DNA of 64,000 nucleotides, taken from contig OZ241833.1 of NCBI GenBank assembly GCA_965202585.1, forward strand, positions 27,962,001 through 28,026,000. The letters are read 5' to 3'. Within the stretch, counting starts at the first letter, position 1. Each line of letters opens with the position of its first letter. Positions 9,101-43,040 of the stretch are shown in pieces. The notes below the pieces were generated by a model. That model worked only from the letters and a program-made list of their open reading frames with translations. It did no database searches and was not told the DNA's origin. Made by a program: the position numbers and the translations under genes. Source of the stretch: Thalia democratica (taxonomy: Eukaryota).

Positions 9101-12100
9101 CGGCCCGATCGCTAAACTTAATTTTCTCATTTTGTTTGTTTGACAATTTGCACGCAAAATAATTCGCAAAGTCATTATCGGAACTTCGTTGTTTTTTGAA
9201 CTTGAGAAACAACAGGTAACTTAATTAAGTATGCTTTTTATAAATACAGCAGTTCCTACGCTAAGAATAAACTTTCCTTAAAGAGAAACATTAAAATGAG
9301 ATTTGTGGTAGTTAAGCTTTTAAGGGTGTAGAAGGTATTATTGCGGCCCGAGTTAATTCTGATTGTTTGCCTGCATTTATTTTAATGATAATACTTATAA
9401 ATGTTGATTTTTGCCTTTCAACACGATGGTTCATTAACACTCACTGTAATAAGTCATATAAAGTAAAACTGTAAGCGTACCTTACACAAGAAGTAGATGC
9501 TAACAAAAACTAGACGTGCTAAAAAACGCACAAATTATAAAACGGTAAGATAAGTTAAAGATAACTAACAGCATACTTTTTTTCCCTAAAAATGTCTCGA
9601 TGCTTACACTTTTGACAATAAAACTGGTTTTCAAACTGTTCCGGTTACAACTGAGAGCTTTTATAAATTTGTGCTTTCCAAAAGTTAATGTCTATTTTAA
9701 ACAGAAGTAAAAGTATTACTCCTTTTTGGGTACAGACTTGTTTGTTGTTTTAATGATAAGTTAAAGGCGTTTATTTTTGCATATAAAGTTTTACAACAAA
9801 AAGTAAACTATATTTTAAAAGAATCTTTTTATTTACCTTTTCGTAAACCTTTTTAATTGTTAATAAAATATAATACTTTATTACAACGTGCTTCCTGCAC
9901 TACATGTTCAATTTCATTTTGGTTAAAATAAAAGCTGTCGTTTTATACATTAATTTAATTTATCACAAGTTCGTTGCTATTTTGTAGTTTTACTAAAGAA
10001 ACTAATTTGGTTATATTAATGTACTGCGTAGAATCATCAATAGCTTACACATATCTAAGTTGTAGTTTTATGATCCGACTTAAAGTTAAAAAATCAGTTT
10101 ACCGTTGTTTTATTTAAAAGTTTTTTTATAATGTGTAAAGTTTTAGTTCGTTAAACTAATTCCTTAGAATATATATTCATAATATTTATTTTTGAATTTA
10201 TATTACTAAATTACATTAAATACATATAAATATTTTAGCAAAACTTATGTACTATTTCATTAACAAAAAATTCTTATAACTGTAGAAGGTAGAAAAATCG
10301 TTCATGTTTTGCCACTAGTTTCTATTTTAATTTCCTAAGTTCAAATAAACCCTAACTAAAATTAGCTAAGCACTAGAATAAGCACGTGATTTGTTTTTTA
10401 TCATATACCAATTAGCTTCAGACACGTTTATTTTAATTAATTCAGTACATCTTTAATTTTGTTTACAATTTATTGTTAAATCAAAGCAAGCAACTTCGCC
10501 AAAAACTCCCCGACAATATCTAATTCCTCGCCAAAACACTACGATTTTCCGTCGCTCGAAGCAGAATTCCCCGAAACTCTCAAAAATTCCCCGAGTCCCG
10601 CCGGTTGGGACGAGCCGTGGTCTTCTCCGATTAAGGAGCCCGAAAATTCCCCTAAGCAGCAACAAGCGGGTTTCGACAACTCGTTCGTCACCGAGGCGGA
10701 TAATCAGGCCGGTAAACCGAGGCAGGGAAGCAGCAGCTCTCTGAGGCGAAGCAACGCGTTCCTCTTAAGCCGGAGGCGGCGCAAAAAGCTCTCCAACTCG
10801 ACGTCGCTCCCCGAAAGTATTGAAAGCGGGGGATCCCCTCAGCGAGAAGAACAAAAAGCCCCGGAGGCGAAACCGAGGAGGTCGCTGAAGCGGAGGCCGA
10901 GTTCTTTGCAGGTGTCGAGGGCCAGAAGTCAGTTGAAAATATCAGGAATGCTGAAATACTTGATCTGAAAAATCACCATGATCACGTGACTTGATAAGTG
11001 TGTGGTGTGTAGATTAACTGCCAGCCTGATTAGTTTTGATTGGATGAAAACTTTTTTTTCTTTCCGGTAGCTGTCACCTCTGACCGGTTAAGGCGCTTTT
11101 TGTGAGCGCCTTACATCGGAAGGAGGTTTTAGCTGAATAAGTTTTTGAGGCTCCTGTGTAGTTCTAATCAGATCTTTTATTTTTTCTGATCAGTATAACA
11201 CGTTTTAAATAATTTTTTTTTTCAATACTGACTAAATGGGAATTTTGTTTTATATTATACTGTACGTAGTTGTATGAAAGCATGGTATAAAGTTTTTTAA
11301 TTGTTTTTTCAAATGTAATTGATCAGTTTATTAATAAAAATTTTTGTACTAAAACGTTATATTAAAATAAAGTTTTTTTTTTAAACTCACCATGTTTGGT
11401 AAAATTTTTATTTCAGTATTAATATAACAATTTTTTGGTGCACATTATGTTTTCTAGTAAAGTGTTTTTGTTTTTAGAAGCATGTAACCTAAACATTTTT
11501 GTTTTATAACTTCTTCCTGAATTAAATAAAATATTTAAATTAAATAAAGCGGCCCATCATAACGTATCAATGTCATCACCGTGCGTTTTCTTATTGTTTT
11601 TTAATTTTTTTCTGTATAGTTGGCCTTATTGGGTTGTAGTTACTCATTACTGTGTTAACTTAGTCATCTCAATTACCAGTACTTAGGAAGTGTTTTTAAA
11701 GTAAATCATATATTATAAAACATAAACTTTGATCAAGTTAATCAAAAAAATATATGTACATTTTTTTATAGATATTTTTTTCTTAGTTTGGTTGTAACTT
11801 TTCCAGCTAATATTATACAAGTTTTATTTTTATAATTCCAATGTTTAAACAACTATTGGTTACTTCTCGATGTAATTAGCAAAAGTTTAATTACTAATCG
11901 TTATATAAAATGTATACTGATTTTCTATAATGAATTGTATATATTAAACCAGTGGTGGAGTTTTCATTGCTCGATTCGTCCATTTTCACATTCATTTGTA
12001 AATTTTAAGTTTTATACTGAATTATATTCACAACACTTCAGTTTTTGTACTTTTAAGTAACAGCAAAATATCGTAAGTTTGCGTTTGACTCAATAACTTG

Positions 12101-18100: not shown

Positions 18101-21100
18101 ATTTTTGTAACAGATATATCTTAGATATATTGATAAAATCGGTTTTAAATATTCAAATTAGTTTGATTCATTACTTTCGTTGATAAATAGTTCAACTAAG
18201 TTAGTATCCAAGTAATACATTTATTCATCTAAAACAGAGTTTCCCAAAGTGGGCCATCTCAGAAATTTAAAAGGCCCTAAGCTGTAAAGGGGCCATGATG
18301 CCAAAATTTGAAATTAACACAAAATATTCTGAAACTTATAATGAAAAAAAAAAGTTTTAGGTGTACAAGGGTAGTTTTGAAACTTATACTAGATATTACG
18401 GGAAAAGTTCAGAAATTTAGGGGGCCACAAAGACATAGTTTAAAATTTACACTAAATTTTCTGGAGTTGATGATGATGAAAAGCAAAAACGGTCTTATGC
18501 GTATTTAAGAGTAGTTTCTGTGGAATCTTGTAAGAGGGGTCACAGCTTTTTAAATTTCTTTAAAAGGGATTTTATGAATAAATACTGTGAAGCCCTGATC
18601 TAGAATCTAAGGAAAATAATTTAAAAACAAATCTACTAAAAATAGTTAAAAAAAAATTGACTATTTATGAACTTTTTGAAAATTTATACACCCAAAACTT
18701 TTTTAGAACAATCCTTTATTTCTTATGAGAACTTTTTTTAAAACAAAAAAAACCTTTTATTTAAGAAAAACAAGAAATTTGACAGTAAATGATTTTATTT
18801 GCAATTAGCAAGCATAAATTAATTTGCAAGCAAAAAATCCCCTTTTACGAAAAACAGAAGCGCCGCTGGCGTCGTCAGAGTCGTGGGACTCGATTTCGTC
18901 CGTTCGCAGCTGCAACACGCCCTCCGCGGACTTTCCCGCCACCAGGGGTCCGTCGCACTCGAGAGGGGGAAGCCCCCTGACCGTTTACAGCCACGGGGAC
19001 CAGGTTCCGTTCGCGGTCAACTTCAAAGAGGTCGTCGACGCCACCATGAAGCCCCACGACGGAATGTTTGTTTGTTACTGATAATTGAATTGCTCATGTC
19101 GGTGATTGTTTAAAACATAACAGAACTTAAACATTAATTGTGTTAGTTTTTACTAATAGAATTGACAACTTTGATAAGTTCAGTTTGAATTTGTTGCATA
19201 TATAAGATATTGAAATAAATTTGGTGATATATTTTTTCATAATATAATTATTAATCATTGTTTTGTTAGTCATGTTTTTTTTTTGATTAGAAACATTTAT
19301 TGAGTTGAAATAATTCTAAATAAAGTATTATGAGATAAAAATTATAACTTAAAGTATTTTTTTTATTCAAATAATTCTAAGCTGACTAAAATTTTATCAC
19401 AAAAACTTAAACAATAAATGTTTTTTTTTAAATTTACTATATTTACCAGATATGTAGCAAAAGTGAGAGGGGAGGTCCACCTTTCATTTTTTAAGGGCGT
19501 CGTAAAAACTTTATTGGCCAATCAGAGCGCTCCGTTGTCGGCACTCTCCTTTGAAATCACCCAGGTCCCGGTTGCCATGGAGATAGTGCCCAACAAATAC
19601 CTGCTCAAAATGTTTGTTAAGTTATTTATTAGTTAATTATTTTAAAGCGCTTGTTCAACTAATAAACTGGTTGTTGGTTTTTTTATAATTGATTATTGTT
19701 CAATTTTGTAAACTATTGCTTTTAATATTTTTTATTTGATACAAATAAAATTGTTTTTTAAAAATAATCTCAATAACCTCCAAGTAACAACACTGAGCAA
19801 CATTAAACAAAATGTATCGATGACCAAAATACCTCATTATTAGTAAATAATAATTGTGATGATTATGACGTCACAGGGAGTCGTTGAAGGACGGGGTGGC
19901 ATTGTTCAGTTTCAACATGGCGGAGTTGATGAAATATTTTCACAAGGTTCAAGGAGACAAGAAAAGCTCGTACGTGGTCTTCACTGCCATCAAGTACATG
20001 GTAGTAGATTTTATTTAAATATTGATTAAGACTGAACATGTCTAATAGATTGAAACATTTTACAGGATTATTTAAGATAAACAATTAGTTTTTATTTATT
20101 TTATCTGAATTTGCAGTTGAATTTTTTGTTCAAATTCGGCCTTTTCTTGGCAGGAAACGTTTCAGTCTGTGGATTAAAAAATACATTTAATTGCGAAAAT
20201 ACCGTTAAATCTTGAATCACTTTTTTTCTGCTATTTTGAAACTTAAAAGTCGATTTGTTGGAGTGTTTTTTAAACCTATAACACTTTAAATTTCTTAAGT
20301 CCGCAGGAACTGGTACTCCACTCTCTGCAAGACCGGTTAAGTCTGAATCACTTTAAATAGGCTTATTTTTTAGTCTTAAACTCATTTTAGGAAATTTAAA
20401 AACTTTACTACTGTATGATAATTGAGCAACTTAAATAACAACTGATAAAACAACAAAAAACGTTAAATATTCGAAGTTCAATCAAAAGTTAGTAGCAAAA
20501 TACGTATTAAAATTAAAAAACTGTATAAAAATAAAAGTTTGAAGAGATAATTTATTCTGAAAATTATTACTTTTTTTTTCAAAATACAAAGGTAAGTAAT
20601 ATAACTAATAACAGTCAACTGCTATCTGATCAAAGCTGGAGTTCTCAAGGAAATAAAATATTTTATGTTGTTTGTTCTTTTTTGAATCTCAAACCTTCAA
20701 ATTAAAAGTTGCAGTTAATTCAATTGCATAGAAATATTTTTCAATTTAATCAAAAGCTCTGGGGTTTTGTTTTACGAAAATGATTAAAAAAAAACAAGCA
20801 ATTTTTTTCAGTACAATCCAGAGCCGAGTAAGTGCAAAGACATACTTCCTGTGGATTTCAGTTGCAAGTGGAGTAATAATGGCAGCAACTCAAATCATGT
20901 AAAATTAGAATACAGGTTATTGAGCGTTTTATTTTTAATTTGAAAAGTTAAGAAATATTTGAATATACTTGTAATGAACTAAATATATTAGCTTAAGAAA
21001 ACTACAAAATTAATTGCTTTTTAAGTACTTTGGTAATAGCTTAAAATTTATTTTTTGAAAGTTTAAAATAGGTTAACTTAAAAAAAAAACCATTATTATG

Positions 21101-22438
21101 GATATATGAATTATGTTTTTTTACTGTGTTGATAAATTGCAAAAACATAAAAAAACATTTGTTAGTTATGTATTATAAGTTAAGTTAAATGTGATTATTC
21201 ATATATACATGGTTTAAATTACTTGGGGTATTTTAATATGAAAACAATAAAATGAATCAGCATGAAACTAATTAACAGTTACAACAAAGAGATGAGCTTG
21301 ATGTCGAGCTTGGAATTCATTTTGCCCGTTGACAAGGAAATCACCAAAGTTGAAACTTCACCGCTTCCAGCTACGTGGTTTGTATGGAGTTATTTTTGTT
21401 TTAGATCTTTAAAAACTTGATCAATGTTTATTGGGAAGGATTCTTGTACACTATTTTGTTTTAAAGTATAAACGTTACAATAAATAACGGACGATGATTG
21501 AAAACAGTGGGGTATCAATTATTTATTATCCTTTATAAAAAAGAGTAATGGATAAGTATTTTTTACCTATAATTTTTTTTTAACTCAAATAATGGCAAGC
21601 CCTGCTGTAAGTACTGTCTTAAGTTGATTGGCTTCAATATTAAGCAAAGACACATACAAAGAATTTTTATTTTCCTATACAAAACAAAATAATAAATACA
21701 TTTATTTACCTTCCAAACCACTTTGTTATTCATACTTTACTTTTCATTATTCACACTTTCACAGGAAACCGTTTGAAAAGCGTCTCTGCTGGAAGAGTGG
21801 CGGCTCTTTCGCGCCACCGAGCGGCAGAAGCGTGGTTACGGAGGGCGAAGTGGTGACTTGCGAGGCGTGCCAGTCGCCATCTAGCGGAAATCAGATTGCC
21901 GCCATTTTCGCGTCGCCGAACGAAGTGGTGAGCGGGGTGGGGTTCCGGGTGAACTGCCCGGGGTACAAGGCCACCGTCGTCAAGAAATCCTTCAAAACAG
22001 GTTTTTTTTTAAATTTATTTGCACACATTCATTTCTTAATACAAAGTGTTTTTGTTTATGATGATAGATACAATTTTTCCGTTTGTCTTAATTGTTTTTA
22101 GATAACTTTGTTCACATGCGTTTGTTTATACAAAGTTTCCGTGTATGCAGTGCTAATTATTTTTTTTATGTTTCTGTTTCGGTGTTCCAGCATTAGTTTG
22201 ATTTCTGTTTAGAGAATCAAAATGTGAAGAAATTTTTAATGTGATGGGTGTAAAATAGTGTGAAATGTTTGAGAAATCTTGCTGTCGAAGTTGTTTTAAA
22301 CATTGTAAAAGTAATTTATATATTTAGTTAAGATTTAAATTTACTTTTTTAAAACCTGAAAAATTTTATTTTGTTAGTTTCACATCTAATTTTAAGTTTT
22401 TTTTTTCAGGAAAGTATTTTTCTACGCTCAGCACGTAG
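69..22438 (+). CDS. FCHO: FCHo1/2-like F-BAR + mu-homology endocytic adaptor, 5'-partial multi-exon gene (21 exons in window, 2499 nt, 832 aa + stop)
   Basis: Hand-spliced exons chain in phase from 69 to the stop at 22438. Peptides match FCHO2 hallmarks: KFQEVEEFHL (KFQDIEETHL), KSKATGIKRP (ESKGTGKERP), VDEEGYTIRP, SSDDSSDSDDD..KIHVKIRP, RGGSPLT..DQVPFAVNFKEVVDA, and C-terminal GYKATVVKKSFKTGKY (GYRFSLIKKRFAAGKY). Confidence 0.95.
364..462 (+). CDS. FCHO: FCHo exon, F-BAR (KFQEVEEFHLEKMKK...ISQ)
   Basis: ttgcag|aaa ... caa|gtaggt; 99 nt, phase 0/0. Confidence 0.92.
886..982 (+). CDS. FCHO: FCHo exon, F-BAR end (VHREIRSK...KATGIKRP)
   Basis: ctcag|gtt ... ctc|gtaagt; phase 0/1. Confidence 0.92.
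2263..2536 (+). CDS. FCHO: FCHo exon (PLLFEDYKPK...EAVSG)
   Basis: tttcag|cg ... gg|gtgaga; GC-rich island; phase 1/2. Confidence 0.88.
3535..3565 (+). CDS. FCHO: FCHo 31-nt micro-exon (GSPEKDAQSL)
   Basis: acacag|t ... ttg|gttagt; phase 2/0 bridges both neighbours. Confidence 0.8.
3725..3766 (+). CDS. FCHO: FCHo 42-nt exon (NVDEEGYTIRPDLK)
   Basis: ttctag|aat ... aaa|gtagtt; conserved VDEEGY motif. Confidence 0.85.
4285..4407 (+). CDS. FCHO: FCHo exon (…SSDDSSDSDDDVISRKIHVKIRPKDE)
   Basis: caacag|agc ... gag|gttata; acidic Ser tract plus IxIxP motif as in FCHo/SGIP1. Confidence 0.88.
4797..5464. mobile_element. Palindromic non-autonomous DNA transposon (TTAA TSD, GG…CC ends; Kolobok-type MITE)
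   Basis: ttaa|gggcatagggggg … cccccctatgccc|ttaa; the two ~330-bp arms are near-perfect inverted repeats. Confidence 0.85.
6703..6783 (+). CDS. FCHO: FCHo exon (AIPTDNNLDALNSIKNKLTLLPAPNPS)
   Basis: tttcag|gca ... tct|gtaagt; resembles FCHO2 SLDELKVSIGNITLSP. Confidence 0.88.
7878..7893 (+). CDS. FCHO: FCHo 16-nt micro-exon (NTKKS)
   Basis: tacacag|aac ... cac|gtgagt; supplies the phase 0 to 1 shift needed for the next exon. Confidence 0.75.
10487..10711 (+). CDS. FCHO: FCHo linker exon (…HYDFPSLEAEF…AGWDEPW…AGFDNSF…)
   Basis: tcaaag|ca ... g|gtaaac; phase 1/1; GC-rich. Confidence 0.8.
10712..10968 (+). CDS. FCHO: In-frame extension of FCHo exon to a stop; probable alternative terminal exon
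   Basis: The frame stays open and GC-rich past the donor for ~85 codons (GKPRQGSSSSLRRSNAF…MLKYLI*). A GC-richer tail and an AATAAA near 11333 follow. Confidence 0.6.
13380..13428 (+). CDS. FCHO: FCHo 49-nt exon (ASSGAIRQLSSKNQSA)
   Basis: gtacag|c ... ga|gtgagt; phase 1/2 fits both neighbours. Confidence 0.75.
13791..15563 (+). mobile_element. Composite non-autonomous hAT-type element, copy 1
   Basis: TIR TAGTGATGTACCGGAC at both ends; 8-bp TSD gttttaac (13783-13790, 15564-15571); ~40-bp subterminal repeats; an extra internal TIR ends at 14059. Confidence 0.9.
15969..16126 (+). CDS. FCHO: FCHo linker exon (…QEDLFAAAPPPIKPA)
   Basis: tttcag|c ... g|gttggc. Same-phase alternative acceptors at 15990 and 16023 make the start uncertain. 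Confidence 0.75.
16706..17127. mobile_element. Mutator-like MITE with 15-bp subterminal repeats
   Basis: 9-bp TSD gtcaacatg (16697-16705, 17128-17136); ends ggttacatgac / gtcgtgcaccc. Confidence 0.85.
17407..17541 (+). CDS. FCHO: FCHo linker exon (GDLLRASMKSAPP…PGTT)
   Basis: tatcag|gc ... g|gttcgt; phase 1/1. Confidence 0.82.
17779..17880 (+). CDS. FCHO: FCHo linker exon (GRPRNRSSLRGS…)
   Basis: ttacag|gc; donor gttagt at 17881, or same-phase gtaaac at 17875. Confidence 0.78.
18235..18597. mobile_element. hAT-type MITE (CAG-A/G-G TIR)
   Basis: cagagtttccc … gaagccctg; flanks atctaaaa / atctagaa. Confidence 0.7.
18858..19065 (+). CDS. FCHO: FCHo exon, start of mu-homology domain
   Basis: aaacag|aa ... 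at|gtttgt; RGGSPLTVYSHGDQVPFAVNFKEVVDA. Confidence 0.92.
19450..19611 (+). CDS. FCHO: FCHo muHD exon (YVAKVRGEVHLSF…VPNKYLLK)
   Basis: taccag|a ... at|gtttgt; matches IVKITGEMVLSF…LPNPQLL. Confidence 0.92.
19877..20000 (+). CDS. FCHO: FCHo muHD exon (…FSFNMAELMKYF…IKYM)
   Basis: tcacag|g ... atg|gtagta; matches FWVNMPNLM…LKYQ. Confidence 0.9.
20812..20915 (+). CDS. FCHO: FCHo muHD exon (YNPEP…LPVDFSCKW…KLEY)
   Basis: tttcag|tac ... ag|gttatt; phase 0/2. Confidence 0.88.
21279..21377 (+). CDS. FCHO: FCHo muHD exon (YNKEM…LEFILPVDKEITKV…PATW)
   Basis: taacag|t ... tg|gtttgt; matches VQFLVPIDGGVTKL…PAVW. Confidence 0.9.
21765..22000 (+). CDS. FCHO: FCHo muHD exon (KPFEKRLCWK…PGYKATVVKKSFKT)
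   Basis: tcacag|g ... g|gttttt; phase 2/1. Confidence 0.9.
22410..22438 (+). CDS. FCHO: FCHo last coding exon (GKYFSTLST*)
   Basis: tttcag|ga; G-K-Y terminal motif followed by TAG. Confidence 0.88.
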
Positions 22439-32516: not shown

Positions 32517-33498
32517 CTACCGATTTTTCGTGATACATTTTATCTTTTTCGAATTGCACAGACAGTCCATGTTTGTGAAATACCCTTTTCCGTACCATAT
32601 GAAGAGCTGCTCGTCCGTTTTAATGGCTTGCTTGCTGACGACAAAGTTCCGCGGGCATATTCCCACCTCCACGTACAGGGTCCTGCAGTTCAGTTTATCC
32701 CCGCAATCGTGGTTGATGAACCTGGTGTGGTTGCCCATCGCGCCCGCGTCTATCTTCATGGTCGAGTAGGTGCAAAAGTTGTAGTTGAGGAGTCCTTTCT
32801 TTTTCATTTGTATCGACCGTTCGTCGCACTCTTCTTCCGTGATGAGCTCTCCAGTGTACTCTCCGATTACTGTGTCTGAAAATAACCGGTTTTTTTAGTC
32901 ACTGTAAATTTAAAAAACAAAATTTGAACTATAACATAAAAAAGGTTGTAAATTGGAAAAAATAATTAAAACATTCAAACTAACTAGCTGGTATTGCATG
33001 CCTGGCAAACAGTCCGTAACCCATTTTTTCGCCGAGTGGCTGCAAATAAAAATGATTTTCAGGATCGTCGAGACAGCTCAGATTGTACTTCTTCAACTCT
33101 TTCAAGGTGATACAGTTGTTCGCGTCACGGTTCGTGTTGTCCAACTGAGTGCCTCTTCTGACCACGAGGTGGTCCGTCCAAACGTGGTGCCTGTGCGGGT
33201 TGGATTTGTAGTAAGGAGCATAAATGCTGCCCGGCCCTCCCTCAAACCTCCTTTCAACCTCGAACTTTCCCTCGTTTGCAACTCTCAACCATTTTTCCAT
33301 TCTTGCTGGTTGCACGTTGGTGGTCCTGAGCGGAGCGAACTTTTTCAACTCGTGCCTGATCGGATTACTTTTTCTGGGGCTCTTTCTCCCTGTGCGCTTG
33401 TTGGAACTTTTTCTTGGTTGCTTAAGCGGACTTTTCCTTGCCGATTTCTTACGTTGCCGATTTCTTTTCTTCCTCGATACCACCTCGGACCAACTCAT
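32517..33498 (-). CDS. Stand-alone SET-domain (putative lysine methyltransferase) protein, 290 aa; exons 33498-32985 and 32875-32517
   Basis: Phase-1 GT(gttagt)-AG intron joins MGYGLFARHAIPA to NTVIGEYTGELITEEEC…IDAGAMGNHTRFINHDC…EQLFIWYG…CLCNSKKIKC; no stops or frameshifts. Confidence 0.92.
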
Positions 33499-33586
33499 TG
33501 TTTTGCTTCAACAACTATAACGGCTTCGATAAATTTTGAAGCGGCTTTTTGCTTCAATAAAAATTAAGGTTTAAGTTTGAACAGAG

Positions 33587-37805: not shown

Positions 37806-39447
37806 TTATATATACATATATATATATTTCGTAACGTAATATTTAAATGAGTTATGATCAAAATACGTTAAACTATTGAAAAGTTTTTGCGAATTGTCTT
37901 GTTTAAACTGTTCTTTTATTAACTGTTAGTATAACTTTAAAATAAGTTAATTTAGTTATAAGTAGACTTTTAATTATTATTTTTTTGCTTTTATGTTGCT
38001 ATACTTAAAATTAGCTTTTACTTTTTATAAATGTTATTAATTTTCTTTTTTTGTAGCACGTTTTATTACCATTTTAAACTATAACTGAAAAAAATATATA
38101 TGAATCTACTATGTTTCTTTTTATAGTTAAATTTTTACTGTGTTTTTGAAGATAAACTTAAAGTAAGTCAGATGAATACATATATTTAGACAGTTTTAAC
38201 AAAAATTATTAAAATTAAAAAATAGAAAAATTTTCGTAAAAATGGTGTGTTTTTACAGAAATTTTATTTACCAAAAACTATAGACAAATTAAAAAAAATA
38301 TTCAAAAATATAAATTTAAGCGTTTGTTAACAAAAGATCCTATCGAAACAAGTTCATTGGAATATATAATAATAACAAATTATACAGTATCCTTTCTTTA
38401 TTACAAGAAAACATGTTTCTGTGTGTTAACGGATTAACACACTTCAACGGAGCTCTGTAAAGAAATAAATATTGTAAGGAAAGAATAGAAGCTCAATAAA
38501 GTAGATATATACATGTGTCCATTAAAAATAAACTAATTGCTGTAGGTTTTAATAGAGTAATTGTTAATAACAGATAAAATACGTTATGTTAAATCCGACT
38601 GTTATAAAACTATACAATACTTGTAATTATTAAATAAATTAAAGTAAAAATTCAAAATAAAATAACAAATCATAATATAAACTACTTACATGAAATCAAG
38701 AAAGTACTAATTTTAAATATTTACTGGTTACTAATCTTTCAAAAAAATATCTAGTATTTACGTCAAGATATTTAGCTCTTATATAAAAACATTTAATACA
38801 AATTAAAATATTTTATTTCAGGTTTTTTTACGATGAAACAATAATACTAAACTTCAAAGCTATTTAAATTATTATTCTATATTAAAATAACGATACAAAA
38901 TCTCATCAAAAACTTTATGTTTTTAATTGCACATTAAGTTAAATTAAATAATAAGCTATGACATAAAATTCTAACGAAATTTTAAGTCATTATTTGGAAT
39001 AAATGCTATAAGTCAAATATATTCAATGTACTTACAATCATAGCTGTGATAGATAGCTTAACATTTTTATAATTATTGTACATTTGTTTGTATAGTTAAA
39101 GCATTATATAAACCAGAAATCAACACGAAAGGCAAGATACTATTAAGTACTGTAATAATAATAATAATAAAGCGTTTACGTTTAGTTTCATTTATTGGAT
39201 TTAAGCTTTAAAAATTATCAAATAAATTAAAGCAGTTTAATACTATACACATTTATGTTTTTTTTTTGTTTTTAGATAGGTTGTAGATAAAATAACAATA
39301 TGTTTCAAATTGAAAATGTTCTTTAAAAAAACAACAAAAAAATTTATACTTTTTATTTTGAAAACATTGTTTAGTAACATTTAATAAAAAAAATTTAGCT
39401 TTTAAGCTCTAAGCTTTCAGATATGCTAACGATTTTTGAAATAAGTT

Positions 39448-42141
39448 TCAAAAAATATTGTTTTCATGTTCCCACTTTTTGTACAGCTCTGTTTCCCAAG
39501 TATTTGTAATTCTTTCCTCGAGGTTCGAACTTTCTTTTTTCCTGACTTCATTCTCGAAGCTTATGATGGACGATCGGACACCAAACCGAAAATGCTTTGT
39601 TTTTTCTGAAATTCCATAACTTTTTGAAAGCAACTTGCCTATGGCTTCCTTCATTTGGTCGTTGTGGTATTTAGTCATACTAGCTCTTTGATTTTCTCTT
39701 TCGCTGGACCAGCCTAAAGAGAAAAATCGTTTAACCTTTTTGTGTTCAAAACTTTTAATTTTTTTGTTCATTGCACTTTCGTAATGTGTGTGTAAACCAC
39801 CTAACTGATCTGAGTAGAACAGTCTGATTTCGCATTCAACTTTTTCGCATTCAACCAACTCAAGGTTTATTTGTATTTCATAAGCTAAATGTTTATTTTC
39901 AATTATTACAAACAATCGAGATTTTCGCTCTGTTTCGTACTTTTTGTATTCCTCTATTAAATTCTCTGAACAATCACCAAAAACTTTCAAATTCGAATAA
40001 AACTTTTGGTTCAGCTTTGCAAAGTATTCAAGAACTTCACCTTTTTCAAACTTACTAGCTTCTTCGAGCTCTTCTTTAGTGCTTATAGATTTAAACCGTC
40101 CGGTCATTTTTTGCTGGTACTCTTTGACTGACATTTCGACATTGTTGTCATACGCTGACTGTACTTGGAATATTTGTCTGTACTTTTGCTTATTTTTGTT
40201 TGTCTTGTTTTTAAAATAAGCACAGTGTTGATCGATGTCACTGTTTAGTTTTATCTCTACTTTTGCTATTGTACTTTTTATGTTTATCTTTGAAACTTTA
40301 AATACAAAGTTTGGAACTTCAATCAAATCATTTTTTGTTTCCTCTTGAAACTCAGATACAATCTGTTTTTTGAACTCGTTTAGTACTTTGTCGTCAATTT
40401 GTTTATCGTTTTCTGCTTTATCATCCACTATTTCATAGATTTTCGACTTGTACTTAGATAAAAACAGCTCCGCTCTTTCTCTACATCGTTTTTCTGCTTT
40501 TGTTTTGATAACTTCCCTCTGAGCTTCTTCTACTATGAACGTATACAGAAAATGTTTTTCATTGTCTACTATTTTTGTTGTTAGCTTGTTAATGCAATTT
40601 CTTTTCGTTTCATCAATATAGCCATCCCTGACTTTGAATGTATAGACGCTTTCATCAAGCAGTATTTCTTGTAAAAAGCTGTTCAGCGTGGCTAATGCCT
40701 TTGCTTTGAGAACCAGTTGAAAATCTGTTAATAAAGTTATGTTATCTACGTAAAGTTTACACTTTTCTTCTAAATCATTTTTGTACTCAGACATAATCGT
40801 TTTTTCTTGAGCATAATACTTTTTTTCAGCTTCATATTTCTTAATATCTTGATCAATTTTCTCCGCCTTTAACTTTTCTTGCAACGATTTAATTTTTTTA
40901 TCTATCAAACTGTTTAAAGTTTTTTTTATTCTTATTTTGTATTTTTCGTTCAGGTTTTTTGTCTTCTTAAATTCGTCACATGCAAGTTTTTTAGCGTCAT
41001 TATGAACTTTTAGCAGCTTGTCTGTAGAATCTATAAATTTTTTACACTGGCTGCTCAACATATTTTTGTAAATTTCAAAGCTCTTGTCAACATTATTACG
41101 GTAATAAAACTCAGCAAAGGCCTGAGCGGGCCTTTTCGAGTCTGGGATATCTTTATCATTGTATGCATTAACGTACAAACCAACTAAACTGACAAAACTT
41201 TCACAGTTTATTTCAGCGCCACCCGCAGATTTGATTTTGATGTTTGCCGGAGTGAGCATGGACGAAATCAGCTCTTTAAGCTTCTCCCTGAAAGAAGCAT
41301 CTATGTTCCCCAATGATCCACGATAGTCGGTGCTCCTGCTAAGAGAGCTTCCGGGGTGAAGTAGCAGAAAACAGCTGAGTTTTTCAAAGCAAGACTTCAG
41401 CGTCTCTCTCAGCTCTCTTAGCTCGCTATCATTCGTTCTGCTCGTTTCTCCGAGCAATTTGTCGTTTAAGTACTTGTTTCCTCCGTCGTACCCGTGCTTG
41501 TAAGCTTCCGGCCACGGCCAGTCGCGCACCAAGTACGTGATGTCCTGAAACGGCTTATCCTCGAACGCTTCCAAGTGGAGCATGGCGAAAGAGGTGAACA
41601 TGTCCAGGTGTTCCAGGTCGTTTTTTTGTATCTGCTTGCTCAGGTTGTAGATCTGCATGCTGCTGAGAAGCGTGCAGAGGGAAAAGAAGGTGATGCTCTC
41701 CTTGTTCGTCGATTCCGAGTCGAACACCCCCTGGCAGTCCATCAGCAGGACGGCGACTTCTTTCTCCTTCGACACCTTGATCCTGAACACCTTGTTCCAC
41801 ACGAGCACCCCGGAGGTCTCCTTGTTGCACCCGCCCCTCCAGCGGAACCCTTCCAAGTTGAAATCGTCGCCCTCCTCTCCCAGCCAGTCTTCGGAGCACT
41901 GGCCGCTGAGCCACCTGACGAAGCAACTGAGCAGAAAGGACTTGCCCAGGCGGAAAGGACCGCACACCGAGATGACGACCGCGGGTAAATCTTGCGCTCC
42001 GTTCTCTCGTATTATGGACTCGAAGGCCTCTTTGTCGTAAAAGAACTCGTCGACCCGAGATCTGTAGCTGATGATGGTTTTCGCTTCGGCTCGGGCGTTT
42101 TGGCTCATTGTAAGTGTATGCTTAAAAATTATTGCTGTCAA
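39448..42141 (-). CDS. Intronless atlastin/GBP-family large GTPase with extended helical tail; likely ATG at 42108 (885 aa)
   Basis: G1 GPFRLGKSFL, GFRWRGG..ETSG..VW, G3 LLMDCQG, KPFQ..TYLVRDW (G4 RD) are all atlastin-specific contexts; 2.7-kb uninterrupted ORF. Confidence 0.93.
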   Translation of the reverse strand: MTAIIFKHTLTMSQNARAEAKTIISYRSRVDEFFYDKEAFESIIRENGAQDLPAVVISVCGPFRLGKSFLLSCFVRWLSGQCSEDWLGEEGDDFNLEGFRWRGGCNKETSGVLVWNKVFRIKVSKEKEVAVLLMDCQGVFDSESTNKESITFFSLCTLLSSMQIYNLSKQIQKNDLEHLDMFTSFAMLHLEAFEDKPFQDITYLVRDWPWPEAYKHGYDGGNKYLNDKLLGETSRTNDSELRELRETLKSCFEKLSCFLLLHPGSSLSRSTDYRGSLGNIDASFREKLKELISSMLTPANIKIKSAGGAEINCESFVSLVGLYVNAYNDKDIPDSKRPAQAFAEFYYRNNVDKSFEIYKNMLSSQCKKFIDSTDKLLKVHNDAKKLACDEFKKTKNLNEKYKIRIKKTLNSLIDKKIKSLQEKLKAEKIDQDIKKYEAEKKYYAQEKTIMSEYKNDLEEKCKLYVDNITLLTDFQLVLKAKALATLNSFLQEILLDESVYTFKVRDGYIDETKRNCINKLTTKIVDNEKHFLYTFIVEEAQREVIKTKAEKRCRERAELFLSKYKSKIYEIVDDKAENDKQIDDKVLNEFKKQIVSEFQEETKNDLIEVPNFVFKVSKINIKSTIAKVEIKLNSDIDQHCAYFKNKTNKNKQKYRQIFQVQSAYDNNVEMSVKEYQQKMTGRFKSISTKEELEEASKFEKGEVLEYFAKLNQKFYSNLKVFGDCSENLIEEYKKYETERKSRLFVIIENKHLAYEIQINLELVECEKVECEIRLFYSDQLGGLHTHYESAMNKKIKSFEHKKVKRFFSLGWSSERENQRASMTKYHNDQMKEAIGKLLSKSYGISEKTKHFRFGVRSSIISFENEVRKKESSNLEERITNTWETELYKKWEHENNIF

Positions 42142-42352: not shown

Positions 42353-43040
42353 GGGAACGGGTCAAAATTGCGCGAGGGGACTAAATAGCACGAAGACAAA
42401 ATTGCACGAGGGGGAAAGATGGCACGAAGACAATTTTGAACCAAGGGTCAACTTTGTACAAGTTACAATTTTGCACGAGATTAAAAAACAGAAATATAAA
42501 TAGATACAAAAATGTAAAATATAAATTAATAAAAGAACAGAAAGAAAAAAAGGTTACTGACCGAAGGTAAGGGTCAGGGGTAACAGTGATAGTAAAAATA
42601 GAAATAAAGAAATAACTAATAAAAATTATTGAAAAAAATAAAAATATAAGAATATTAAATTAATAAAAAAAAAAAGCTACCGATCGAGGGTAAAGGTTAA
42701 GGGTAACAGCAATAGTAAAAAAACAAAAAAAATCAATAATTGGTTAAAAAAGTAGTTACTGATTGAGGGTAAGGGTTAGAGGTAGCAGTGATAGTAAAAA
42801 AAAAATAAAAAAAGTTATTAAAATAATATTTAAAAAAATTAAAATTTTGAAAATTAAAAACAATAAACATATAAATAAGAAAAACTAAAATAAAATAAAA
42901 ATTTCAAATGAAAAACAAAATAAAAATTAAACCCGTGAAAAAATGTCTACGTCAAAATTGTCTGCTCGTGCATAATTATCTTTGTGTAGTTTTGTGCCTT
43001 CGTGCAATTTTTTCCCCTCGTGCAAATTTGACAGGTACTC
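42353..43040. mobile_element. Mutator-like MITE with TTGCACGA subterminal repeats
   Basis: TIR gggaacgggtcaaaattgc / gcaaatttgacaggtactc; 9-bp flanks tgaaagtat / taaaagtat. Confidence 0.85.

Follow-up and report, generated by a model that had tools for sequence, protein, structure and literature searches.

A predicted anchorless, atlastin-derived GTPase with about five tandem three-helix-bundle-like units, encoded by an intronless gene of Thalia democratica

Gene structure, conservation and expression

We describe here an open reading frame lying on the minus strand at positions 39448-42141 of a 64,000-nucleotide stretch of Thalia democratica DNA, hereafter the window. As listed, the frame comprises 897 aa and starts at a TTG; the true initiator Met is its residue 12 (window position 42108), which yields a protein of 886 aa, equal in length to two orthologues. 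The complete coding sequence (CDS; 39448..42108, minus strand, TGA stop at 39448-39450) was defined from the list of open reading frames, the translation, and the start and stop common to the 886-aa orthologues P0001 and P0003. The gene is intronless, as a preliminary description had claimed: the frame is unbroken, it begins and ends where the orthologues do, and the related contig L003 aligns colinearly over 2457 nt, continuing past the stop into 3' flanking sequence. The 3' flank of the gene is AT-rich and contains AATAAA-like signals. Other genes of the window look intron-rich, and long open reading frames are rare in this genome.

The 2.66-kb frame is kept open in DNA of 26% GC. Its 5' third (41209..42108, minus strand) is GC3-rich: computed by codon block, GC3 is 0.68-0.90 over codons 1-200, about 0.55 over codons 201-300 and about 0.3 thereafter, and the GC3-rich tract is missing from distant orthologues. 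Marine metatranscriptome reads cover the frame at a depth of 450-1300, the flanks being at 55-80 and 0, and among the best-supported joints listed from the read layout none falls within or beside it. No other copy of the gene was found, and the window contains no tandem paralogue; the ten largest neighbouring open reading frames gave no recognisable domain in a Pfam scan.

Two marine metagenome contigs carry full-length, colinear orthologues of 886 aa, 43-45% identical to the T. democratica protein. Lineages as diverged as this agree in length and unit architecture, and three independent contigs keep the stop position together with the C-terminal residues. In pairwise comparisons dN/dS is 0.10-0.19 for the head and 0.23-0.36 for the tail, with values of up to 0.58 for unit 5; no segment reaches 1, and the tail evolves faster than the GTPase head. 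The gene is functional, conserved and expressed. Tail-only phmmer matches among 1.84 billion representatives were confined to the protein's own small clade, and a scan of metagenome contigs with the family alignment gave no further loci; since word-indexed and exhaustive tail searches yielded near relatives only, a deeper alignment was not obtainable.

The GTPase head

Residues 20-325 (41134..42051, minus strand) form an atlastin-type GTPase domain (Pfam PF02263, E 8.7e-55), and the region of residues ~20-417, corresponding to the GTPase plus the first three-helix bundle (3HB), aligns with the solved structures of atlastin-1 and atlastin-3 at E 1e-78 to 1e-82. The best phmmer matches are to ATL3 (5vgr, E 7e-82) and ATL1 (about 1e-78), followed at a distance by RNF112 (1e-25) and the GBPs (about 1e-11). 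All the atlastin GTPase motifs noted in the preliminary description, including the G1 arginine, could be recognized: by motif reading, the P-loop GPFRLGKS carries the arginine typical of atlastins and GBPs (41938..41961, minus strand), and it is accompanied by the switch-1 Thr (T98), G3 DCQG, G4 RD (R195-D196) and the HPG guanine cap. Among 206 columns near-invariant in canonical atlastins, 102 are retained, and these include every nucleotide-binding motif. In a phylogenetic tree the clade is nested among canonical metazoan atlastins, on a long branch of 2.3 substitutions per site. Both the phmmer ranking and the tree support the derivation of the protein from an atlastin.

Absence of a membrane anchor

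A Kyte-Doolittle scan of the whole protein (19-residue windows) revealed no transmembrane (TM) hairpin after the 3HB. The highest value, 1.36, falls in the P-loop strand, and orthologues do not exceed 1.39; 16 of the 17 canonical atlastin-type controls reach 1.9-2.9 at their TM hairpin, the remaining one, metagenome row P0006, being at 1.73. The lack of any hydrophobic segment in the tail, already remarked on the letters alone, is therefore upheld, and when the protein is aligned with canonical atlastins, its helix simply continues where TM1 should start. The protein is accordingly predicted from its sequence to be TM-less and cytosolic. We also considered, and found no support for, a C-terminal membrane helix of strongly amphipathic character: the Trp-rich C-terminal helix has a hydrophobic moment of only 0.3-0.4, which is moderate and makes membrane binding speculative, and a negative mean hydrophobicity.

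Tail units and their origin

The tail may be divided into five units, all on the minus strand. Unit 1 (residues 326-430; 40819..41133) is the canonical atlastin 3HB: alignments to the PDB entries reach residue ~417, Foldseek superposes it on 5vgr with an rmsd of 2.0 A over 92 residues, and it scores 28.2 in hhalign against the canonical ATL 3HB profile. Unit 2 (residues 431-541; 40486..40818) is a 3HB copy, aligned with unit 1 in register over 79 columns (hhalign 34.1, P 1.3e-5), which retains the canonical Y-x3-L-x3-C signature and is modelled at pLDDT 82-92. Unit 3 (residues 542-652; 40153..40485), modelled with the A-B-C helix pattern, is a 3HB-like copy aligned in register with unit 2 above all nulls (20.8), and has the B-C loop motif x-F-x-F-K-V in common with it. 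Unit 4 (residues 653-764; 39817..40152) is a further 3HB-like copy, in register with unit 1 (28.9, P 1.4e-4), YDNNVEMSVKEYQQKM being the counterpart of YRNNVDKSFEIYKNML in unit 1; no part of the tail is more conserved than its helix A, with invariant columns densely clustered at 650-667, and its pLDDT (45-77) is the lowest of the model. The terminal, 3HB-like unit 5 (residues 765-886; 39451..39816) features a RFFSLGWSS loop and the Trp-rich C-terminal helix, with F795, G799, S801, S802, W871 and W879 among its invariant residues; its hhalign scores are marginal (18.4 to unit 1, 18.3 to ATL), at a consistent offset of about +16 (+15 to +17).

The five tyrosine motifs that first drew attention to a repeat, YKNML, YKNDL, YKSKI, YQQKM and YESAM, do occur where they had been placed, at residues 358, 453, 564, 675 and 787 of the listed frame. 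Support for serial duplication of the 3HB, as proposed at the outset, comes from comparison of family-profile units and from the tail model with its five A-B-C units. The scores for units 1-2 and 1-4 equal the positive control, unit 1 against ATL, and are about twice those of reversed profiles (at most 15.3, n=30); column shuffles gave at most 15.6-18.9 (n=40 each). Of the 10 best alignments among units 1 to 4 and ATL, nine are in register. The motif can be extended to Y-x10-Y-x3-[LIMV]-x3-[CVFILM], a form chosen post hoc, after the data had been seen, which occurs 4 times, a number that no shuffle out of 20,000 attained. Units 3 and 5 are weakly tied to the others by sequence. Smith-Waterman comparison of single-sequence segments, significant for R1-R2 only (z 3.5), is too weak a method to decide on the repeat; a first set of unit boundaries was likewise too weak. 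The CDS contains no tandem repeat at the DNA level. Taken at the profile level, the data support a tail of about five tandem 3HB-like units arisen by internal duplication.

A full-length AlphaFold model, built on a 4-sequence alignment, was unusable (pLDDT 41), and the tail was modelled alone. The tail-only model (pLDDT 75.8) consists of five A-B-C helix units, each helix C being continuous with the next helix A. Its alignment comprises 5 sequences only and its pTM is 0.40; confidence is low in unit 4 and in the loops, and the bundle orientations are unreliable. Its helices span model residues 3-31, 38-57, 64-128, 133-157, 173-240, 249-268, 287-314, 319-349, 354-383, 391-461, 478-504 and 520-560. 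Within each unit of the model, helix A continues for 8-11 residues beyond the Tyr of the Y-motif, which thus does not mark a helix start, as had been thought.

Structural comparison by VIA relates unit 2 to the RNF112 3HB (9jju; Z 10.7, rmsd 1.9 A over 89 residues), unit 5 to the ATL1 3HB (3qnu 344-434; Z 9.1, rmsd 3.5 A over 90 residues), and the rod to the Sey1p stalk (model residues 1-428 against Sey1p 313-687; Z 9.7), to the two 3HBs of GBP1 (316-479; Z 9.4) and, over two to four units, to spectrin repeats (Z 7.4-8.2), with the tool's own caution that a Z of 9-11 between helical bundles may mean a common arrangement rather than kinship. The elongated rod had no significant match in a global Foldseek search of the PDB or in an ESM Atlas shape search. 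When a protein language model was searched with only the tail as query, the named matches that ranked highest were clusters of the Sey1 3HB and of the GBP C-terminal region.

Discussion

Compared with canonical atlastins (ATL1-3, Drosophila Atl), the protein shares GTPase motifs, linker and first 3HB, with 38-40% identity over residues 20-420, but lacks the TM hairpin and, probably, the post-TM amphipathic tail, carries four extra 3HB-derived units of ~111 aa, which add about 460 aa, and is encoded by an intronless gene. Tandem 3HBs joined by continuous helices, as predicted in our model, are also found in the Sey1p/RHD3 stalk, made of four such bundles in Sey1p (PMC4576867); here the units are five, TM segments are absent, and the head is atlastin-type, with no Pfam match to the RHD3-type GTPase (PF05879). 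That the units were copied from the protein's own 3HB suggests an independent origin of the stalk, convergent with that of Sey1p/RHD3.

Anchorless atlastin paralogues are already known, and the five-unit 3HB stalk is a new variation on them. Silkworm BmAtlastin-n is a TM-less, cytoplasmic paralogue of 770 aa with a "coiled-coil middle domain", for which 3HB repeats were not reported (PMC4926086). Judged by its published description only, it resembles the present protein in its atlastin-clade head, long helical middle and C-terminal region and lack of TM segments, and differs in length (770 versus 886 aa). The architecture put forward in the preliminary description is in part already in the literature, as TM-less long-tailed atlastins (BmAtlastin-n, PMC4926086) and as the multi-3HB stalks of Sey1p (PMC4576867), while this particular tail has no homologue outside its own clade; for the latter reason the loss of the anchor was probably independent of that in the TM-less insect proteins.

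The GBPs (GBP1-7) are similarly soluble, with a GTPase head of the same superfamily, and the GBP1 stalk starts with two 3HBs (PMC4576867). In sequence, however, they are much more distant than atlastins (E about 1e-11 versus 1e-82). Pfam gave no match to GBP_C (PF02841) at E up to 1, a CaaX box is absent, the C-termini (NNIF, NQFF, NQFL, GVLW) containing no Cys, and the long back-folding alpha12/13 helix of GBPs is not evident in the model.

The reading we favour, with a probability of roughly 0.6, is that the locus is an intronless gene for a TM-less, atlastin-derived GTPase of the dynamin-like kind, in which four old 3HB copies of ~111 aa replace the anchor, and which would act as a nucleotide-gated long-range tether or scaffold and not as a fusogen. 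GTP binding would dimerise the heads via the surface that faces the nucleotide, which is how all GTPases of the atlastin/GBP group pair, and the P-loop arginine would assist catalysis; unit 1 might then dock or cross over in atlastin fashion, so that the long rods would be paired or swung. The distal tip is expected to bear the two conserved elements of unit 5 that are richest in aromatic residues, namely the RFFSLGWSS loop and the C-terminal helix with its W-x7-W pattern; since the predicted topology sets one beside the other, the tip would most likely engage a partner or, peripherally, a membrane surface. Polymerising or tethering behaviour, given the biology of the family, is plausible.

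An immune role had been raised at the outset. A GBP-like, cell-autonomous effector, polymerising on pathogens or their compartments and convergent with vertebrate GBPs or BmAtlastin-n, would agree with the lack of TM segments, the long helical stalk and the faster evolution of the tail, and a TM-less silkworm atlastin paralogue does restrict baculovirus and microsporidia (PMC4926086, PMC9005921), an antiviral function having been shown for the silkworm protein alone. We do not favour this reading and regard it as unlikely: dN/dS is below 1 in all segments, length and unit architecture are frozen at 43-45% identity, unlike those of birth-and-death immune families, CaaX box and GBP_C match are both absent, the 64-kb window contains no tandem paralogue, and the tail shows no detectable kinship with other proteins in the set of 1.84 billion representatives. 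A bolder combination would have an ER fusogen remodelled independently, in a marine-invertebrate lineage, into a soluble GTPase rod of five bundles in the manner of Sey1p; this atlastin-derived analogue of GBPs would serve cell-autonomous defence as a tether or coat gated by nucleotide, and its aromatic tip, itself a novelty, would bind membrane or pathogen. Such a combination seems to us decidedly unlikely.

Turning to the tail itself, it is very unlikely to be a generic K/E-rich coiled coil whose ~111-aa periodicity reflects chance or composition. Such a view could appeal to the single significant Smith-Waterman pair, to the absence of a DNA-level repeat or Pfam repeat family and to the non-significant global Foldseek matches; yet units 1-2 and 1-4 score as high as the unit 1-ATL control and twofold over reversed nulls that preserve periodicity, 9 of 10 best alignments are in register, the offset of unit 5 is consistent (+15 to +17), and the model shows turn-separated A-B-C bundles rather than one long coil. 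Canonical atlastins require TM segments, and these could be imagined to come, in a membrane-anchored ER fusogen, from an unrecognised downstream exon, the other genes of the window looking intron-rich, or from a partner subunit. This is highly improbable, given the stop and C-terminal residues conserved in three independent contigs, the colinearity of L003 past the stop, the absence of joints within or next to the frame among the best-supported ones listed, and the helix continuing where TM1 is expected. An intronless gene, in a genome where long open reading frames are rare, might finally suggest a decaying, functionless retrocopy of an atlastin mRNA. Purifying selection (dN/dS 0.1-0.36, 0.58 in unit 5) effectively refutes this, and the 2.66-kb frame open in 26% GC DNA, the orthologues of equal length and the metatranscriptome coverage also speak against it.

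An atlastin stalk lengthened fivefold by copying its own 3HB, with the anchor removed at once, amounts to a natural experiment, and offers a clean system to learn what a dimerising atlastin head does on a rod that is long and unattached, and by what route stalks of several 3HBs evolve. Sey1p fusion activity depends on stalk length (PMC4576867), and the evidence points to convergence with both Sey1p/RHD3 and GBP1. Following the silkworm paralogues, it would also be the second instance, and an independent one, in which an atlastin has left the membrane, and it touches on the question of whether invertebrates use derivatives of atlastin in place of GBPs (PMC9005921). Its practical importance will stay modest as long as no cellular role has been demonstrated.

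Spectrin-repeat rods (spectrin, alpha-actinin, plakins) are also built of three-helix units of ~106-111 aa joined by continuous helices, but have no GTPase head; as neither a Pfam match to the spectrin repeat nor a sequence relationship was found, the resemblance is one of analogy only. Among the AFDB matches are KASH, kalirin and GAR-domain proteins. The molecule name of PDB entry 9jju, LOC432253, led to no literature; the entry proved to be RNF112 (ZNF179). Besides a RING at its N-terminus and TM segments at its C-terminus, RNF112, an atlastin-like GTPase, possesses a single 3HB, which can be superposed on unit 2, against the five units described here.

The GTPase head and the missing anchor

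By its head and first three-helix bundle (3HB), the product of the minus-strand gene at window 39448-42108 is an atlastin derivative. Residues 32-301 match the Pfam GBP/atlastin N-terminal GTPase domain (E 8.7e-55), and phmmer against PDB sequences retrieves atlastin-3 (5vgr, E 7e-82), atlastin-1 (E ~1e-78) and Drosophila atlastin (E 1e-71), in alignments spanning residues ~31 to ~417, that is, the G domain and the entire 3HB; GBPs reach only ~1e-11 to 1e-9. Identity to canonical vertebrate and mollusc atlastins is 38-40% in a region-restricted database search. The GTPase motifs are intact, as the preliminary description had it: the P-loop GPFRLGKS with its arginine, the switch-1 Thr, DCQG (DCEG in distant orthologues), RD and the HPG guanine cap. 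In a quick maximum-likelihood tree, the protein and two orthologues form a long-branched clade (SH-aLRT 100) inside canonical metazoan atlastins, whose exact sister group is, because of the long branch, not reliable.

The protein is not a canonical atlastin, since the transmembrane (TM) hairpin which defines that family is missing. Kyte-Doolittle means over 19 residues peak at 1.36, within the buried P-loop strand, and at no more than 1.39 in the orthologues, versus 1.9-2.9 for the TM hairpin in 16 of 17 canonical atlastin-type sequences (1.73 in the remaining one, the metagenome row P0006); the lack of any TM segment, noted earlier, is thus borne out. In a joint alignment, the protein runs on as a charged helix where canonical atlastins enter TM1. 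Two marine metagenome proteins, P0007 (638 aa) and P0010 (604 aa), are also TM-less and atlastin-like, with unrelated helical tails.

Identity as a GBP was rejected, there being no GBP_C domain, no CaaX and only a distant head; a Sey1p/RHD3 identity was likewise discarded, the head being different. The predicted stalk may nevertheless work like those of Sey1p/RHD3 and GBPs.

The tail as an internal repeat

The tail can be divided into five units, at residues 326-430, 431-541, 542-652, 653-764 and 765-886. The five Y-x-x-x-hydrophobic motifs lie where they had been placed, at residues 358, 453, 564, 675 and 787 of the open reading frame (11 more than when counting from Met). The segments around the Tyr read yyrnnvdksfeiYKNMLSSQC, kyyaqektimseYKNDLEEKC, rcreraelflskYKSKIYEIV, aydnnvemsvkeYQQKMTGRF and fysdqlgglhthYESAMNKKI in units 1 to 5, and nnlaavaskdiYNKSMEEAC in canonical atlastin; the Y-x3-hydrophobic-x3-Cys pattern, near-invariant in canonical atlastins, is kept in unit 2. 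An extended motif, defined post hoc, occurs 4 times; 20,000 shuffles never yielded as many. Units 2 and 3 share an aromatic-x-F-K-V loop motif at equal offset, and unit 5 has F-x-F-G-V ~17 residues later.

As Smith-Waterman comparison of single-sequence segments reached significance for the first pair only (z 3.5), units were compared by hhalign as family profiles of 4-5 sequences each, cut 12 residues before each Tyr. Units 1 and 2 align in register over 79 columns with a score of 34.1 (P 1.3e-5), units 1 and 4 in register with 28.9 (P 1.4e-4), figures which compare with 28.2 (P 9.7e-5, in register) for the positive control, unit 1 against 17 canonical atlastin 3HBs, and with null peaks of 15.3 for reversed profiles retaining composition and helical periodicity (n=30) and 15.6-18.9 for column shuffles (n=40 per pair): the tail is an internal repeat, as had been proposed. 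Units 2 and 3 score 20.8 (P 0.0064), again in register, and 9 of the 10 best alignments among units 1-4 and the atlastin profile are in register. Unit 5 scores 18.4 against unit 1 and 18.3 against atlastin (P 0.016 and 0.014), at an offset of +15 to +17 which is constant against units 1, 2, 3 and the atlastin profile. Unit 4 is closer to unit 1 of the same protein than to canonical atlastin sequence, as expected under internal duplication. No periodicity was found in the CDS at the DNA level, and all five units are colinear in orthologues of just 43-45% identity: the duplications are therefore old.

Structure prediction reached a pLDDT of 41 at full length; a model of the tail alone (residues 325-886, 5-sequence alignment) has a mean pLDDT of 75.8 and a pTM of 0.40, confidence being highest in units 1, 2 and 5 and lowest in unit 4 (pLDDT 45-77). 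It features five units, each made of helix A, a turn, helix B, a loop and helix C, and helices of 65-71 residues (model 64-128, 173-240, 391-461) span two units, acting as helix C in the first and as helix A in the one that follows. In every unit, the Tyr falls 8-11 residues ahead of the end of helix A, so that these residues hold equivalent positions, but are not the helix starts for which they had been taken.

Unit 1 superposes on atlastin-3 with an rmsd of 2.0 A over 92 residues (Foldseek). VIA-align matches unit 2 to the RNF112 3HB (Z 10.7, 1.9 A) and to ribosome-recycling-factor three-helix bundles (Z 10-11), unit 5 to the atlastin-1 3HB (Z 9.1, 3.5 A over 90 residues), and multi-unit stretches to the Sey1p stalk (Z 9.7), the two GBP1 3HBs (Z 9.4) and spectrin/plakin repeat pairs (Z 7.4-8.2), values which for helical bundles, as the tool cautions, indicate a common arrangement, not kinship. 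When the tail alone was used for a language-model feature search, the best named matches were Sey1 3HB and GBP C-terminal clusters. AlphaFold DB cluster matches are weak, and over-represented among them are spectrin-repeat proteins and the tails of proteins annotated as GBP, atlastin or RHD3; in one cluster, A0A6A4VLA4 (881 aa, annotated 'Atlastin-2'), residues 579-879 align structurally with units 1-3 (probability 0.99), hence long-tailed atlastin-annotated proteins may occur in other animals.

Gene, transcription and selection

The minus-strand open reading frame at 39448-42141 is real, but shorter as a protein than described: its listed start is a TTG, and the first Met, ORF residue 12 (window 42108), gives 886 aa. 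Two full-length marine metagenome orthologues are exactly 886 aa long, with a Met-Ser start and a C-terminal end at the equal aligned position. The surrounding DNA has a GC content of 24-30%, with flanks as low as 16%, and, being stop-rich, makes an open frame of 2.66 kb strong evidence for a gene; the 64 kb contain no more than six other ORFs with 150 aa or more, two of them within the GC-rich 5' part of the gene. AT-rich DNA with poly(A)-signal-like hexamers follows the stop.

The absence of introns was confirmed: L003, a related contig of a JGI sample with 86% nucleotide identity, stays colinear with the window across 2457 nt, passing through the stop, and none of the joints listed in a marine metatranscriptome is inside the ORF, all being in an upstream repeat. 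Summed metatranscriptome contig depth stands at 450-1300 over the ORF, and falls to 55-80 in the 3' flank and to 0 over the 167 nt immediately upstream. Most of these contigs are 90-97% identical to the gene, and thus derive from close relatives or from divergent alleles. L003 carries one frameshift (837-892, near protein residues 350-378): the contig may be misassembled there, or represent an allele or a broken paralogue. Beside near-identical contigs, unlabelled sequencing runs of this organism yielded one of 913 nt that carries 35 differences (~96% identity) in the G-domain/unit-1 portion (window 40901-41812), which points to a divergent haplotype or close paralogue.

Pairwise Nei-Gojobori dN/dS, as ranges over two pairs, is 0.10-0.19 for the head, 0.23-0.36 for the whole tail and highest, 0.36-0.58, in unit 5: purifying selection acts over the entire length, more weakly toward the C-terminus. 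With the tail alone as query, exhaustive phmmer over 1.84 billion cluster representatives matched only two clusters, both of this same family; the tail is therefore lineage-restricted. A Macrostomum lignano protein, P0014 (1384 aa), scores E 3e-169 at just 34% identity, a combination suggesting two or more atlastin-type G domains in a single chain.

Proposed function and novelty

Judged by its motifs, the head would have all requisites of GTP-dependent head-to-head dimerisation and arginine-assisted hydrolysis. As these motifs are complete and unit 1 looks like a normal atlastin 3HB, nucleotide-driven docking or crossover is likely retained. A rod of about five bundles would take the place of the membrane hairpin. 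The unit 5 A-B loop and the C-terminus are both at the distal tip of the modelled topology and bear two dense invariant clusters with aromatics (R794, F795, G799, S801, S802; W871, W879), through which the tip may bind a partner or, peripherally, a membrane. Conservation within the tail is densest in unit 4 helix A (residues 650-667), which may serve as an interface within the molecule or within a dimer. Such a protein would act not as a fusogen but as a long, nucleotide-gated tether or scaffold.

The published Sey1p stalk has four 3HBs joined through continuous helices, and GBP1 starts with two 3HBs (PMC4576867). Soluble atlastin paralogues such as silkworm BmAtlastin-n have been published (PMC4926086; reviewed in PMC9005921), two additional TM-less ones being mentioned in silkworm (PMC4926086). 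What is new is the construction, by serial duplication of the atlastin 3HB, of a Sey1p-like rod of five bundles which is fixed throughout a marine lineage; a literature search found no description of such a serial-3HB construction. The earlier idea of an immune effector has published precedent and no support from the locus, and is speculation.

Base composition and flanking repeats

GC3 declines 5' to 3' in the gene (rich part, window 41209-42108), from 0.68-0.90 in codons 1-200 to ~0.55 up to codon 300 and ~0.3 thereafter, in a genome of 26% GC; orthologues of 43-45% identity lack the gradient (GC3 0.30-0.38). Further short GC-rich islands at 2201-2600, 10451-11050, 18801-19150, 21701-22050 and 32551-33500 suggest a genome-wide trait of 5' exons, such as GC-biased conversion near promoters.

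A MITE-like element lies at 42363-43030, 250-900 nt upstream of the start codon, with 36-nt terminal inverted repeats (42397-42432 and 42995-43030) enclosing ~92-nt direct repeats. In three 2025 runs resembling genomic DNA its summed contig depth reaches ~90,000-490,000, against ~150 for the gene, and it must therefore be a very high-copy family. A second very high-copy repeat, reaching ~470,000 in the same three runs, is located downstream of the gene, at 38300-38800.
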